A DNA stretch of 63,765 nt, counting the filler, from Neoconidiobolus thromboides FSU 785 (lineage: Eukaryota; Fungi; Entomophthoromycota), in NCBI GenBank assembly GCA_025603075.1. It is 4 parts of 4 records of this genome, joined end to end, with 100 filler letters (N's around TTAATTAATTAA, not from the genome) between each part and the next. Parts side by side here need not be neighbours in the genome. Positions count along the whole stretch, not along the records: positions 57,129 to 63,765 come from MU626725.1; 3 more parts are not named here. One strand, given 5' to 3'. Position numbers and translations under genes: made by a program. Under the pieces are notes generated by a model that was given only the letters and a program-made list of their open reading frames with translations, was not told where the DNA came from and did no database searches. Below, one piece after another: positions 57,129 to 63,765 of this stretch. Position 1 is the first letter of the stretch. Each line of letters opens with the position of its first letter.

Positions 57129-58465
57129 TAGCTATTTTCATAAAAAGGCTTTCTAATATAAAAACTAGATAGCCTATACCTTTGAAATTAAAATTGTGGA
57201 GTATGAATTTAGTTAATGTAACAGCAGATGATACCCCAGTAACATAATACTAATGATAGAAAACGTTTATAATAATTTAGGTAACTACATTATTATAATA
57301 TGTTTAAATGGTAGTTGATTAAACAAGATATCAATTAACCAAGCATAGGATCATATTGAATGAAATAAAAATGGATGGTACAAAATATACTTATCTTGGA
57401 CTTCCCCTAATATAAAATTTCTATCATATTTTAGCCCCCTTATAAATAATTTTTACCTATATTTGAAAGTGTATTTGGTTTAATCCTATTCAAGTTAAGT
57501 CTATAGTTAACGCTCCGCAATTGTTTGTTGATCTATTCAGTCAATATAATTATGAGCCACAAGTTGAAGCCCAAGTCTAATTATAACTTAAATGTAGTAT
57601 AGTAATAATTTTATTAAATTTAAGTTTTTATGATAGAAGAGAGGATAAACCAAATAAATCGTGTCTTCTCAAATACTTTAAACGTCTTTTTTCTTTCGGG
57701 TATCGGTTCCGAATATTTTATTTAATACAAAAATTTTAAATCAAAAATTAATAAACTTAAAGCGCTGAACCATTGAGAGCAGCCTGTTTAAGAACTCAAA
57801 GATATAGTTCAGCTCATTCTTAAATTTGGTTGATATAAGAAGGTAAAATAGTAATTTCTTGATTCTAATTTCTGGAGGATATCTCAATAAATGAGAAGAG
57901 GATTGTAATTATAGGTAAATGATGGGATTGTCAGTGGATTAAGTGAGTTAAAGTGCAACTTTTATGTAAAGTCCATAATCGTGTAGAAGAGATAAAAGGC
58001 CTTATCAAAAAGCCAAAATAAAAAATTAGACAAATAGTGGGAGGAATGAGATAAGTTAAATGTAGATAGTATCTGGAACAATAAAGGTAACACAAGGGAT
58101 TCATTACGAAAACTTATGAAAGTGTGGAATTTAGTGGGAAGTAATGGCAGCAGTTGATTGAGACGAACTCGAATTCGGAAATGGTATTCAAAAGAATAAA
58201 TGCTATATAGGCATCTTTCCAGAGGTTATAGCAAACATGCATCTAGGGTTTTTAGCTGGAAAAGGTTAGATAAAAGAGTAAATCAACAAAAAGAGTTTAG
58301 ATAAAGATAAGTCTATATTTTTTATTAGGATTACAAATATAATCTTACTGAAAGTATCAAATGCGGAGCATGATTTGAGCTTTCTAATCAAAGTAAGCTG
58401 GTTTTTTGAGGCTCTAATTGAATAGGTTTAACAACTTATATAAAATACATCAAATTACTTTGATC

Positions 58466-58574
58466 ATATGGGGGTGTTTTTTTTTTTGCTTCATTGTTTT
58501 TTTCATCTTTTAAACATTATTTGAGTGGAAAAATTGTTAGTGAAATTCTTAAACACAAAAATACATTCTCATAT
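58466..58574 (-). mobile_element. ~105-bp foldback MITE-like element
   Basis: ATATGGGGGTGTTTTT...TTTGAGTGGAAAAATTG...AATACATTCTCATAT. Confidence 0.85.
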
Positions 58575-58714
58575 ATTTTGACATTTATACCAGAGTCCAT
58601 CCTTAATTCAAATCTTAGTTTGAGTTGAATGATTATGGAACTATTAATTATACTCTTTTAAACTAGCCATATTAAATTTTATAGTTCACTAAACAATAGA
58701 CTAGAAAATTTAAT

Positions 58715-58815
58715 ATATAAGAGATGTATTTCTTCAAGAATTTTACTAACAATCTTTCTGCTCAAACGGCGCTTAAAAATGGTAAAAGTGGTAAAATCAA
58801 AAAACACTCTCATAT
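58715..58815 (+). mobile_element. ~100-bp foldback MITE-like element about 130 bp upstream of the GPCR-like ATG
   Basis: ATATAAGAGATGTATTT...GCTCAAACGGCGCTTAAAAA...ACACTCTCATAT. Confidence 0.8.
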
Positions 58816-58948
58816 CATGTTTTATGTTCTATTTGAAAAATCAAATAAATACAATTTATTATAGAACAAGTTAATCAATTAAATAAATAAAAGTTATCAG
58901 ATATAAAATTATAAAAAAACACTTTCCTTTTAACTTTTAACTTTGAAG

Positions 58949-59841
58949 ATGAATATCTCTCGTGAATTTAATATGAATTTAACTAACTTTTTCTCTAATT
59001 CAATATCATTAACTCTCATTCTATTCTGTTTTTTTTATTTACTATTATATCATATTATAACAAAGAGATTAACCGTTCAATTACTTACAAATCGTCCTTA
59101 TGTATACTATTAAGTGACTTAATCTATAATTTAAGGTTAATACTTGGAACAATACTTTATGAATATAAGTCACCATCAGTTTGTTATTTAAGGATTTGGA
59201 TGGTTTCATTTGATATTTCAAGTTCAATGTTATACTCAATAGTCATAGCAGTGGTCTATCTAATCAATATAAAATATCAATACAAAATCACAAAGTTAAT
59301 TAAACGCTTAATCCTTATAATTTCAATATTGATATCGTTGACAATAAGTCTATCACCCATTGCATTTAACAAAATTGATGCTACAGAAAAGAGCTGTGGA
59401 TACAGAACTGAAAAGGGAGGAGAATATTGGTTAGTAGTATGTAATTTTTTAACAGTATTTGTAGGGGTAATAGTAATACCAATTACATATACAGTACTAA
59501 TTTACCATCTAATAAAGAAGAAAAGAGAGTTAAATAAGACAAATATCAAATTAAATAGAAGTGGTCTGGATATTAGCTATTACACCCTTTATAGATTAGC
59601 TTTATACCCATTGGTACCAATCATTGCACATGGTGTTACTATTTATTTATCAATTGGTGCTCTTTTAGGAATATCAATTGATAGTTACTCTGTGCATATT
59701 TTGAGCTTAATTTTAACTTTCTTTTCTAGTATACAAGGGCTTATAAACTCAATTTTATATCTTACTAACTCAATCTTCTTAAAAGAGATAAATGTTCTTA
59801 CTGATAAGTTATTTGGATCTGACTATTATAAATCATTATGA
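58949..59841 (+). CDS. 7TM GPCR-like protein (cAMP-receptor/Git3-like), with a 1-nt frameshift in a T8 run near 59029-59036
   Basis: ATG 58949 frame gives TM1 (NSISLTLILFCFF). Adding one T continues LFTIISYYNKEINRSITYKSSLCILLSDLIYNL...PSVCYLRIW into the 59200 ORF. That ORF has further TMs, a KSCGY loop Cys, RLALYPLVPII and SSIQGLINSILYLTN. Confidence 0.7.
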
Positions 59842-60349
59842 TTAGTAGAGTTTTTTTGATCAACAATAAATTCGATCCTCACTCAAAAAGCATAGTATTC
59901 ACATTTAATAGATTATAGCCCTAAGTTCAATTTCATACAATATAGTCAATCTTGTAAAAATCTTTTAATTCTAATATTTTATCCATAGCTTTTTTGTATT
60001 CCTTGTTTAAATAAACCAAGTACTCGTAAAGATCTGCTATAAAAAATAAAGTACTAAAAGCTATTTATTGTTTGTTTATACAAATTATCAATTTAAGCTT
60101 AGCAAGAAGCTTTTAAACTATGTACATAATTTATTGTTAAACTTTTATTATTTATCCTGATAGCTTCAATCTAGGTTAGCAATCTTTATGTAGCGAATCT
60201 CACAAGCAAATGAAATGTGTTTTTTTTTTCATTGAGATGGTAGGGGTTATTCATAGTAAAAAAGATTACTATCAATAAAGATCTTTTAGTATTAGGACTG
60301 ACAAATACCTAAATATTCGATGGTAACATCAAGCTAGATTGATTTGTGA

Positions 60350-60925
60350 TGACAAGCTTGTAACTTCTTCTGAAGCTACTGTTGGGGTAGATAGAATTTT
60401 CTATTTGATTAATGAGGCCCATAGTCTTTGTACATCTATAAAATTTTTAGAAGATCAATACAGTTAAGTACCAGATTGAAATATTGATAATTTTATAGAT
60501 ACAGAAGAAAATTTTAATTTTTTAAACTCTAGTATTACTTCATTATAAACACTAAACTTTGTAAAACTTTTTTATAGATTATCTGTGTTATATATCTACT
60601 AAAATTTCTCTAATAAAGCTTTGGTAGTTTTTATCTAAACATATAGTAGAGCTAAGATAGTAACTCATTGTTAAAGATATTCGAGTAGAAATGTTTGTTT
60701 TCAAAGCCTTAGCTTTTGACTATAGATGGACTGCAAAGTTAGTTTTGTGATTGTTCAACTACTAAAATTTTACAATACAGTTATTTATATCTCAATATCA
60801 TACTAGTAAATATAAAAGAAATGAAATTGGAAATGTTTTCATCAGGAATGGAAGATCCTAATTCTTTGCAAAGGAAAACATGCTCTTACGTCCATCTTTG
60901 ATTCTAAGCTGGCAACGGTATGAAA
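60350..60925 (+). pseudogene. Possible RecQ-like helicase relic
   Basis: KLVTSSE, FYLINEAH (cf. DEAH) and FSSGMEDPN (cf. FGMGIDKPN) occur in the expected order. There are many stops and the spacing is shorter than canonical. Confidence 0.22.
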
Positions 60926-61224
60926 GCCATAATTCCTTAACCTAAAGGTTAGAAACCTGGACCATTTCTCGATTTTTCTGCTTTACATTTGAAGAATATT
61001 TTTTCATTATTTAGAATGTTTTTTTACCTCAATAATTTACTAGAGATATTTCTAGATTTTGTTTCGTAAAAAATGCATTTTGGTGCTAAAATGTTCGCTT
61101 CAAAAATGAGATTTATTTACTAAAATTAATAATATATTACAGCCTTTAAATAAAAAATATAAGTTATTTAGTTTATTTGGGAATAAGTGCGACTCTAGTA
61201 CTAATCTAGTGTTTGGTTCAGAAT

Positions 61225-61350
61225 TTAAGGCCAGTGACGATGAGTCCCACTATTAAAGAATTTTCCAGCAGCTGGTTGATTATTGATCGAAACTGAGGCG
61301 ATTGAAGACAAGATGTAAACAGTGTAAGCGATGAGTAAAGTAACTTGCAT
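61225..61350 (-). CDS. 41-aa secreted peptide precursor, copy 1: MQVTLLIAYTVYILSSIASVSINNQPAAGKFFNSGTHRHWP
   Basis: Own translation (below the ORF-track cutoff). AAA-ATG context, hydrophobic leader and exact length match to the paralog at 63449-63574, with several synonymous differences. Confidence 0.8.
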   Translation of the reverse strand: MQVTLLIAYTVYILSSIASVSINNQPAAGKFFNSGTHRHWP

Positions 61351-62054
61351 TTTGTTTATAGTTGATAAGTACCTAACACAATTAAATTTTATAAAGGTGA
61401 TAAAATTACTTATATTTATATTTTTTGGTAAAATTATAGAACTATACTAAAAACATTAGATGTATTACTACCCATGGCAATTCAATTAAACTTTATAGTT
61501 TGATTTCTTTATGACCTGATTTATGTCAATAGCTCGTGGTATATATCCCACTGTCGTTGACCAAATACATACTTGATTTACGGTTATAGTGTATCATTAT
61601 TAGTTGCTTCTAATTTAAAAACTCTATATTTATGTTTTATAATTTGAATAAAAAAAATAGATTTCTCATATTTTTATACACCCTTTTAATAAATATATTT
61701 AAAACCTAGGTCCACTTAAGTTTATAAATATTCATCCGGTACATATTGACTTATAAAAATAAGTTAATAGTCGTTTTTGGCTATTTCGTATCTATTAGTC
61801 ATTTTCACGTTATTGTTATATAAAATTATTTTCATTACAATTTGATATTATAAAATACTTAACTGTTAACAACTTGTTGTTTTGAGCTGTCGACTATATG
61901 GTCTCTAATCTTGTATTAATTGTTATTACCTTGACATCATTGTCTATTTTATAGTTATTTGACTTTTAGCTCAGGTAATAACGAAATTAGAAAAAAGTAC
62001 AAACATTGAAGTTGAAGGAACTTTTAATGTGTGTTTCTTTAGAAATATTGATAA

Positions 62055-62160
62055 ATATGGGGATGTATTTTTTTGTTTAAGAATTTTACTAACAATCTTT
62101 CTGCTCAAATAGCGCTTAAAAAGTGGAAAAGTAATGAAACCAAAAAAAACACTCCCATAT
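62055..62160 (+). mobile_element. ~105-bp foldback MITE-like element
   Basis: ATATGGGGATGTATTTTT...CTCAAATAGCGCTTAAAAAG...ACACTCCCATAT. Confidence 0.85.
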
Positions 62161-62789
62161 ACTAAATATAACCAAAGTATTATAGTCCAATAAAAAATCG
62201 AGTTTAACCTAAAATTGAATCCCTTTGAAATTTAACTGATTTTATAATTTAGCTCTTATATTTAAAATTGGAGTACAAATTACTAAACTTATTAAGTTAT
62301 CCATAAAAAACTAGTATAATATATTTGGTACTCTTAAAAAAAGATTATTAATATCTGAGATAGATTATTTGTATCATTAGATTTAGAAGCGTAGGATACA
62401 AGACTTTGATTAGAATAATAGTTTTAATCAATAAAGTACAAATGATATCTCAGTAACGAGAAGAACCTCAACAAGTATTGGGTATTATTATTATCCTTTA
62501 GTTTTAGCAAAAGTGTAGTGATAAAAGATATTGAACAAGTTGCTTGGATTAACCAGGTTTAGTTTCCTACAGTTAAAGCAAGAAATGATCATCAAAGAAT
62601 AGATCAAGCACAAGTTTCCCTTAGTATAAAATATCTAATAAGGTTTAGTCCCATGTATATAGCTTTGACTTATTTAAAAATGTGATCGATTTAGTCCTAA
62701 TCAAGTTAATACAATGTATAATACCCCTTTATTGTTCACTATTTTATTCCATTAATATAATTAATGAACCACGAGTTGAGATAGAAGTC

Positions 62790-62895
62790 TATGAGAGTGT
62801 GTTTTTTGACTTCATTGCTTTTCTCATCTTTTAAGCGCTATTTGGTAAAAAAAATCGTTAGCGAAACGCTTAAATACAAAAATATATCCCCCTAT
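62790..62895 (-). mobile_element. ~105-bp foldback MITE-like element
   Basis: TATGAGAGTGTGTTTTT...TAAGCGCTATTTG...AATATATCCCCCTAT. Confidence 0.8.
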
Positions 62896-63448
62896 GGTAT
62901 TCTAGAAAAAATGATGTAATTTTGTAAACCTTTAGTTTTCATGAAATACAAAATATCAAAATATTACAATAAAATATGAAATTTGGTTTAAAGATATAGA
63001 GCCAAAGTGCAGATGTATATATTTTAGTGAAGTGGTAAAACAATAAATAATAAGTTGATGTTAGCAAACATGAATTTGTTAAAATCGTAAACTTATCAAT
63101 ATTCTATTTATTTTAGCACATTAAAGTTTTGTATGACTAAAATCTCAAGCATATTCGTTAACACATCAAGTTTTATCAATATAAAGCAAATTTAAAATTA
63201 TCTTTGATGTAGGAATATGTTCAAGGTCTAGTACAATTTTATTCAATTTTACTGTGTATAAAGAGTGAAAAAATAATACATTGTCATATCTAAATATTCT
63301 ACTATTAATAAAATAATAAACTTTTAACTTTCATGATTTACAATAAATATTGTTATTTGGAGGTATTCAAAATAGTGTTATTTCTATATCTTTGTCTTTA
63401 TTTCTAAGTAATATCTCTCTAATAGTCATCTAAGATATGATTTAATGT

Positions 63449-63574
63449 CTAAGGCCAGTGACCACGGGTTTCAAAACCATAGGCTTTATTAGCAGCTGGT
63501 TGGTTGTTGACCGGAACTGAAGTGATTGAGGACATAATGTAAACAGTGTAAGCGATGAGTAAAGTAACTTGCAT
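63449..63574 (-). CDS. 41-aa secreted peptide precursor, copy 2: MQVTLLIAYTVYIMSSITSVPVNNQPAANKAYGFETRGHWP
   Basis: Homology with copy 1 begins at AAA-ATG 63574, so the start is there rather than at the ORF-track 63634. TATA-like TATATA lies about 65 bp upstream. Confidence 0.8.
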   Translation of the reverse strand: MQVTLLIAYTVYIMSSITSVPVNNQPAANKAYGFETRGHWP

Positions 63575-63765
63575 TTTATCTATAAGTAATTTGTATCTAA
63601 GGTAATTTGAATTAATTGAATGGTAAAGTACCACTATATATACTCCTTGATTACAATATATAATTGTGAGTAAATATTGATTTGGTTTTATGGTATATAT
63701 CTCAAATTAAGTTCAATAATTAGCCTCGTTTGTAACTTAATTTACATTAACAACACATGGTAGAT

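Follow-up and report, generated by a model that had tools for sequence, protein, structure and literature searches.

Two open reading frames (ORFs) of only 126 nt lie 2.2 kb apart on the minus strand of scaffold MU626725.1 of the early-diverging fungus Neoconidiobolus thromboides FSU 785 (assembly GCA_025603075.1), and the question they raise is whether they encode real peptides and, if so, of what kind. The window, that is, the whole stretch of 63,765 nt that was analyzed, contains this scaffold in its complete length of 6637 nt (positions 57129–63765; GC (guanine plus cytosine) content ∼26%); all positions given below are window positions. A first-pass annotation of the locus had described the two ORFs, here denoted A and B, as precursors in which a variable core lies between a conserved leader and an invariant C-terminal His-Trp-Pro (HWP). 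Their coordinates and translations match that description, and the distance from ATG to ATG is 2224 nt. By exact-sequence look-up, the public collection lists neither ORF among its called genes, but it does list a neighbour of 213 residues. We conclude with moderate confidence that A and B are real peptide-coding micro-genes; judged from their sequences, they are tandemly duplicated paralogues.

The way in which the two copies have diverged bears directly on this question. Peptides A and B share 71% identity, 29 columns being invariant (M1–I13, S15–I17, S19, V20, N23–A28, K30, T36 and H39–P41), and the ORFs differ at 25 of 126 nt, the initial 38 nt being identical. This run of identity ends in codon 13, where an ATC/ATT difference is the single, synonymous change that the first-pass annotation had reported for the first 13 codons; the further synonymous changes that it had listed (tct/tcc, aat/aac twice, act/acc and taa/tag) were all found. 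The leader (codons 1–28) is changed at 9 of 84 nt, with none of the nine changes at a second codon position (p = 0.026), compared with 15 of 30 nt (50%) in the core (codons 29–38; Fisher p = 2 × 10⁻⁵). Over the HWP codons and the stop, 1 of 12 nt is changed (Fisher p = 0.015 against the core), and the stop is kept through a change from TAA to TAG. Nei-Gojobori counts of ∼5 synonymous and 4 non-synonymous changes yielded a ratio of non-synonymous to synonymous substitution rates (dN/dS) of ∼0.23 for the leader, whose four replacements (L/M, A/T, S/P and I/V) are all conservative. For the core, dN/dS is ∼1.8, derived from ∼13 versus 2 changes, which is no significant departure from neutrality. 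The proposed layout of conserved leader, variable core and fixed HWP end is borne out by these figures. The additional claim that the core conserves a lysine, an aromatic residue and a threonine stands in so far as K30 and T36 do remain, but two identities at ten near-saturated positions do not go beyond chance. We propose that constraint acts on NNQPAA and on the C-terminal HWP, and that the ten residues between them are free to vary or are diversifying.

Further properties of the two ORFs point to coding DNA within an AT-rich scaffold. The start codon, with an A at position −3, is kept in both copies. The GC content of the ORFs is 40% (A) and 43% (B) compared with 26% for the scaffold, and their codon use favors ATC for isoleucine (6 of 7) and TAC for tyrosine (4 of 5), whereas the ORF of the neighboring seven-transmembrane (7TM) receptor gene uses ATC at 8 of 47 and TAC at 8 of 24 positions. 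Four of the other five frames contain 3–6 stops in both copies. For copy B, the ORF finder also lists a GTG-started extension to 61 residues, which has no counterpart in copy A. At the fixed offset of 2224 nt, identity rises above background only at ∼61195–61389, a region that extends from ∼40 nt 5′ of the ATG across the ORF to ∼30 nt 3′ of the stop; beyond it, identity is 30–40%, as expected for this base composition. The loss of similarity outside the ORF noted at first reading is thus confirmed, the similar region being confined to ∼195 nt around each ORF.

Evidence for transcription came from two sequencing runs with the same organism label, X5 and X6, which are classed as RNA by guess only and were examined over positions 58700–63765. 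Run X6 contains one contig of 169 nt (61219–61387; 0 mismatches) that spans all of ORF A together with 37 nt ahead of the ATG and 6 nt beyond the stop. Run X5 contains one contig of 166 nt (63401–63566; 0 mismatches) that includes ORF B from codon 3 onward and the 48 nt after its stop. Both align colinearly to the genome and reveal no splice at or after HWP. Elsewhere, the two runs cover only copies of an element resembling a miniature inverted-repeat transposable element (MITE) and parts of the 7TM ORF, and ∼3.4 kb of unique intergenic DNA is uncovered. From the lengths involved, we estimated the chance that all four unique pieces fall within predicted transcribed units to be roughly 0.005. 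Because the predicted units are covered and the intergenic DNA is not, this pattern fits RNA rather than DNA at low coverage. Genes A and B are each probably transcribed.

The anatomy of the two genes is consistent with short, independent transcription units (Table 1). The first-pass annotation had pointed to an AAA-ATG start context and a TATA-like box ∼65 bp upstream in both copies; we found both, with TATA[AT]A hexamers at −70 (A) and at −68 and −66 (B). The upstream end of the X6 contig, 37 nt before the ATG of gene A, lies ∼30 nt downstream of the hexamer, and the X5 contig ends within the AATAAA that follows gene B. Per strand-nucleotide of scaffold, TATA[AT]A occurs at 0.0048 (∼1 per 200 nt per strand) and AATAAA at 0.0032; since both hexamers are common here, it is their matching positions across the copies, and not their mere presence, that count as an argument. 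A short 3′ motif, TAGAT.A.TA.TAGAG, also follows both stops. These positions suggest an unspliced mRNA of ∼240 nt for each gene. An exon of a larger gene was considered as well and rejected: the stop is conserved and lies within probable-RNA contigs that continue colinear past it, the minus strand has no long ORF further downstream, and the other open frame (see below) lacks both an ATG and splice signals shared by the two copies. In a further probable RNA run, X8, the summed contig depth is 132 at 63263–63431, just 3′ of the AATAAA of ORF B, and 0 over ORF B; this signal may mark where the ORF B transcript ends (3′), stem from a different transcript or come from a similar AT-rich sequence.

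Table 1. Coordinates (window positions) of the peptide genes and of other features on scaffold MU626725.1.
Feature	Position	Strand	Remarks
Peptide gene A	61225–61350	−	41 codons + TAA; GC 0.40
Gene A, leader (residues 1–28)	61267–61350	−	Hydrophobic
Gene A, variable core (residues 29–38)	61237–61266	−	
Gene A, HWP + stop	61225–61236	−	
Peptide gene B	63449–63574	−	41 codons + TAG; GC 0.43
Gene B, leader	63491–63574	−	
Gene B, core	63461–63490	−	
Gene B, HWP + stop	63449–63460	−	
Conserved unit A (∼200 nt)	61193–61392	−	Short 5′ leader + ORF + ∼30 nt of 3′ flank; coincides with probable transcript
Conserved unit B (∼200 nt)	63417–63616	−	74% identity to unit A, ungapped
TATA[AT]A hexamer, candidate core promoter (A)	61415–61420	−	−70 of ATG A
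Overlapping TATA[AT]A hexamers (B)	63635–63642	−	−68/−66 of ATG B
AATAAA, candidate polyadenylation signal (A)	61172–61177	−	+48 after stop A
AATAAA (B)	63397–63402	−	+47 after stop B; X5 contig ends at 63401
7TM receptor gene	58949–59841	+	Frame with seven hydrophobic segments open at 58999–59841
MITE-like element, copy 1 of 4 (∼105 nt)	58465–58575	+	
MITE-like element, copy 2 of 4	58715–58818	−	
MITE-like element, copy 3 of 4	62050–62165	−	
MITE-like element, copy 4 of 4	62795–62895	+	

Searches for relatives of the peptides found none. A word-indexed protein search with peptide A gave no candidate, and an exhaustive HMMER search with a two-sequence profile against 1.84 billion representative proteins yielded no true relative; its two hits, long repetitive bacterial-type proteins that sum weak ‘S.SINYQPASGSFF..GT’-like repeats of ≤10 bits each, were dismissed as chance. 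There was no usable match by features in the ESM Atlas and no match to the peptides in Pfam or NCBIfam, and a profile search of the PDB returned only transmembrane (TM)-helix noise (E ∼0.6). In the JGI metagenomes, a degenerate leader pattern had 0 matches, and the pattern NQPAA-N30-HWP-stop had 12, which we attribute to chance as they lie on contigs of 49–69% GC and have upstream stops or no leader. Searches of titles and abstracts for Conidiobolus brought up nothing on a peptide pheromone or a small secreted peptide. Because gene callers missed the ORFs even on their own scaffold, protein libraries would lack equally short paralogues too, and the blank in the libraries does not show that the family is small. 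On the scaffold itself, tblastn with both peptides detected no third copy, so that the ‘family’ of the first-pass annotation amounts to two copies as far as this scaffold shows. ORFs A and B are single or low copy in the DNA run X3, with summed depths of 22 and 97, respectively, against ∼25 for unique DNA. The higher value, seen at 63432–63600, may reflect further close paralogues in that strain or overlapping unitigs.

What the two genes might produce can be outlined as follows. The best explanation overall, to which we give about an even chance of being right, is that they are transcribed tandem micro-genes encoding a peptide with a variable core that is targeted to the endoplasmic reticulum (ER) and cleaved. 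Each of the two independently transcribed genes would give rise to an unspliced mRNA and thence to a 41-residue pre-peptide, the N-terminal ∼20 residues of which (VTLLIAYTVYIL/MSSIA/TSV) would serve as a hydrophobic targeting segment. A 41-mer leaves the ribosome before the signal recognition particle can act, so this segment would have to take the peptide into the ER post-translationally. Signal peptidase would then cut around SSIA-S-V, at either side of the serine, to release a product of ∼21–23 residues, (S)VxxNNQPAA followed by the 10 variable residues and HWP-COOH, in which the C-terminal proline would protect the peptide from carboxypeptidases. We infer that the peptide enters the ER, is cleaved and is secreted, and any bioactivity is likewise an inference. 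Residues 3–20 are hydrophobic (mean Kyte-Doolittle value 1.9 in A and 1.7 in B) and residues 23–41 are polar (−1.4), and the segments SSIA-S-V (A) and SSIT-S-V (B) place small residues at the candidate signal-peptidase positions −3 and −1, features with which secretion is plausible.

Several observations weigh against this explanation and lend weight to others. The minus-strand +1 frame is also free of stops across the 126 nt in both copies; it has no ATG, it meets stops within two codons on each side, and the leader changes would be radical replacements in it. An ATG, an open frame and a stop survived 25 random substitutions in 8–11% of simulations, so retention of the ORF is by itself weak evidence. 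The RNA status of X5 and X6 is guessed, depth is 3–4, and the contigs are uninformative about strand and true termini. Only two copies are visible, and no homologue appears in any library against which the ORF could be compared across species. As for targeting, the hydrophobic stretch of 18–20 residues is long for the h-region of a signal peptide and equally has the length of an anchor, and no Lys or Arg precedes it, K30 following instead. Met-Gln N-termini are substrates of NatB acetylation, and in yeast the N-terminal acetylation of proteins is reported to interfere with their post-translational import into the ER. Because of the long hydrophobic run, the missing basic n-region and the Met-Gln start, an uncleaved membrane microprotein is a serious rival: A and B would each consist of a TM anchor of 18–20 residues and a polar tail ending in HWP, and would not be secreted. 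Their best 19-residue Kyte-Doolittle windows, 1.8 (A) and 1.5 (B), fall around the usual TM threshold of ∼1.6, the sole nearby positive charge, K30, lies on the C-terminal side, and the PDB yields weak matches to a TM helix of D1 from photosystem II, explained by hydrophobic composition alone. SSIA/SSIT-S-V, however, obeys the −3/−1 rule of signal peptidase, and a hypervariable tail with an invariant C terminus is more typical of released ligands and toxins, neither point being itself a test; on balance we hold an anchor to be unlikely, though well worth keeping in view. Slightly less likely again is that the ORF is fortuitous and that what was duplicated is a short transcribed or regulatory non-coding element, made up of two conserved blocks and a free spacer. 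Such an element would sit well with the existence of two copies only, with ORF retention at p ∼0.08–0.11, with the second open frame, and with identity that extends over synonymous sites in the first 38 nt and over a 13-nt block (GTCACTGGCCTTA) at the 3′ end. It would not account for a leader devoid of second-position changes and with conservative replacements, for the preserved ATG (A at −3) and stop, or for the ATC/TAC codon bias. Moreover, neither unit is matched by an Rfam model up to E = 1, no tRNA genes were found on the scaffold, and the 200-nt units fold worse than shuffled sequences (z = +1.9 and +1.1). Although some of the single tests are weak, chance is a poor explanation of the ORF pair. 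The scaffold is rich in MITEs, two copies of which lie between the ORFs, and the first-pass annotation had itself named a transposon or non-coding repeat as a possible origin of the similarity. Against fragments of a dispersed repeat or transposon stand the X3 depth of 22–97 over the ORFs (baseline ∼25; ∼2.6 × 10⁵ over the MITE), the lack of inverted repeats around the 200-nt units, the intact ORF in both copies and the lack of a third copy on the scaffold, and we assign this origin next to no weight.

The remaining readings concern function. A 7TM receptor gene lies 1.4 kb away, and A and B could be taken for mating pheromone precursors of an early-diverging fungus that are possibly sensed by this receptor; their small size, tandem paralogy and variable mature region would suit that role. 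The peptides nevertheless have no CAAX motif, no Kex2 sites and no repeats, no mating-type genes are visible on the 6.6-kb scaffold, and adjacency of genes is no evidence of binding. By language-model features, the nearest Atlas clusters of the 7TM protein carry the labels Dicty_CAR, 7tm_2 and Git3-type and represent cAMP-receptor-like, GPR157 and Git3-type receptors (0.96); Pfam yielded a sub-threshold 7tm_1 match only, and none to STE2 (PF02116) or STE3 (PF02076) at E up to 1. Given the cAMP-receptor-like neighbours and the lack of an STE2/STE3 match, the gene is not of the pheromone-receptor type, and we consider the pheromone reading very improbable. Nothing in the data supports any of the roles that the first-pass annotation had suggested, be it pheromone, peptide of ribosomal synthesis with post-translational modification (RiPP) or host-directed effector. 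A broader version, in which A and B would be the visible members of a lineage-specific family of secreted signalling peptides (self-signalling, mating or host-directed), is improbable to a lesser degree; they would then be the first ribosomal peptide signal to be described from an early-diverging fungus, with NNQPAA and HWP serving processing or docking, the core conferring specificity and the adjacent G-protein-coupled receptor perhaps acting as sensor. More doubtful even than a pheromone are precursors of MSDIN-like RiPPs cut after proline by a prolyl oligopeptidase, with a leader to P26 and a 15-residue core, AAxK...HWP, to P41. MSDIN precursors (amatoxin, phallotoxin, cycloamanide) are 34–37 residues long and consist of a conserved leader, with Pro ending both leader and core, a hypervariable core and a conserved C-terminal follower that is required by the POPB macrocyclase. 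A and B are likewise very short (41 residues), a variable core follows their conserved leader, and the invariant P26 and P41 bracket a 15-mer exactly, a weak point with two sequences. They lack the MSDIN motif, however, and have no follower peptide, the stop coming directly after P41 and the X5 contig continuing unspliced for 48 nt beyond; their hydrophobic, signal-like N terminus sets them apart from MSDIN leaders, which are cytosolic. The scaffold carries neither an oligopeptidase nor a tailoring gene, and the peptides show no similarity to anything in Pfam or among the 1.84 billion representatives.

The 7TM gene and the MITE-like element are the other main features of the scaffold. In the frame with the seven hydrophobic segments, the first ATG (59200) comes after TM2, and the ATG at 58949 is in another frame, in which it is followed by two N-x-S/T sequons. 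It follows that a short intron or a shift by 1 nt lies close to the T8 run at 59028–59036; the break in the frame is probably not an assembly error because the X3 contig is gapless there. Within the 7TM ORF (59592–59661, plus strand) lies the only Rfam match of the scaffold, a sub-threshold hit to the U1A polyadenylation inhibition element (U1A_PIE; 26.9 bits versus a gathering threshold of 50, E = 0.022), which is most likely due to chance. The MITE-like element has the terminal inverted repeat ATATGGGRGTG ... CATCCCCATAT. Its summed depth in X3 is ∼2.6 × 10⁵, compared with ∼25 for unique DNA, which corresponds to the order of 10⁴ copies per genome; it is also abundant within the contigs of the probable RNA runs. 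Positions 57629–58400 (plus strand) are purine-rich, with a positive GC skew of up to 0.40, a GC content of 30–31% and no long ORF, and could represent a decayed element or an untranslated part of a gene.

Taken together, we regard A and B, with moderate confidence, as missed micro-genes with transcript support, and the present evidence does not back the pheromone claim. ORFs of ∼40 codons are too short to pass the cut-offs applied by fungal gene callers and in secretome surveys. If the peptides are truly secreted, AT-rich early-diverging fungi would carry peptide genes that are absent from current catalogues of effectors and signals, and the simple motif of a leader and a terminal ...HWP-stop could be used to mine the remainder of the genome. 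How useful this is in practice hinges on finding more copies or orthologues and on detecting the peptides.

Comparison with known peptide precursors places A and B beside several families. The a-factor-type precursors of Ascomycota and Basidiomycota are alike in their size class (∼35–60 residues), their multi-copy paralogues and their invariant C-terminal tri- or tetrapeptide. They are defined, however, by a CAAX motif (Cys, two aliphatic residues and any residue; site of farnesylation), whereas A and B end in HWP and contain no Cys anywhere; and they have no hydrophobic signal, being exported by an ABC transporter, in contrast to the hydrophobic N terminus of A and B. In Kex2-processed repeat proteins (KEPs), which include the alpha-factor-type and the dikaritin (ustiloxin-type) RiPP precursors, several near-identical cores are flanked by KR or RR Kex2 sites (PMC6339444, PMC7329392). 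KEPs resemble A and B as short fungal precursors with a hydrophobic N terminus, core-variable paralogues and small peptides presumably released into the secretory pathway; A and B differ from them by a single core, no internal repeat, no dibasic site and a far shorter length (41 residues). The absence of Cys and of KR, RR and KK agrees with the earlier assessment that the peptides, having neither a CAAX nor a Kex2 site, are of neither the a-factor nor the alpha-factor type. No UstYa/DUF3328 or tyrosinase-type tailoring genes, as in dikaritin clusters, were found on the 6.6-kb scaffold, where the 7TM gene is the only other sizeable ORF. Animal toxin and antimicrobial precursors, such as those of conotoxins and frog skin peptides, show a matching evolutionary pattern, with a signal region, putative in A and B, under purifying selection and a fast mature region (dN/dS ∼0.23 versus ∼1.8 in A and B, from small counts), but A and B come from a fungus-like organism, lack a pro-region and a Cys framework, and have a mature part that is not strongly cationic and amphipathic (net charge ∼+1 to +2). 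By analogy, A and B form an orphan family that follows the pattern of many secreted ligand and toxin families: a conserved signal, a fast mature region and a fixed terminus.

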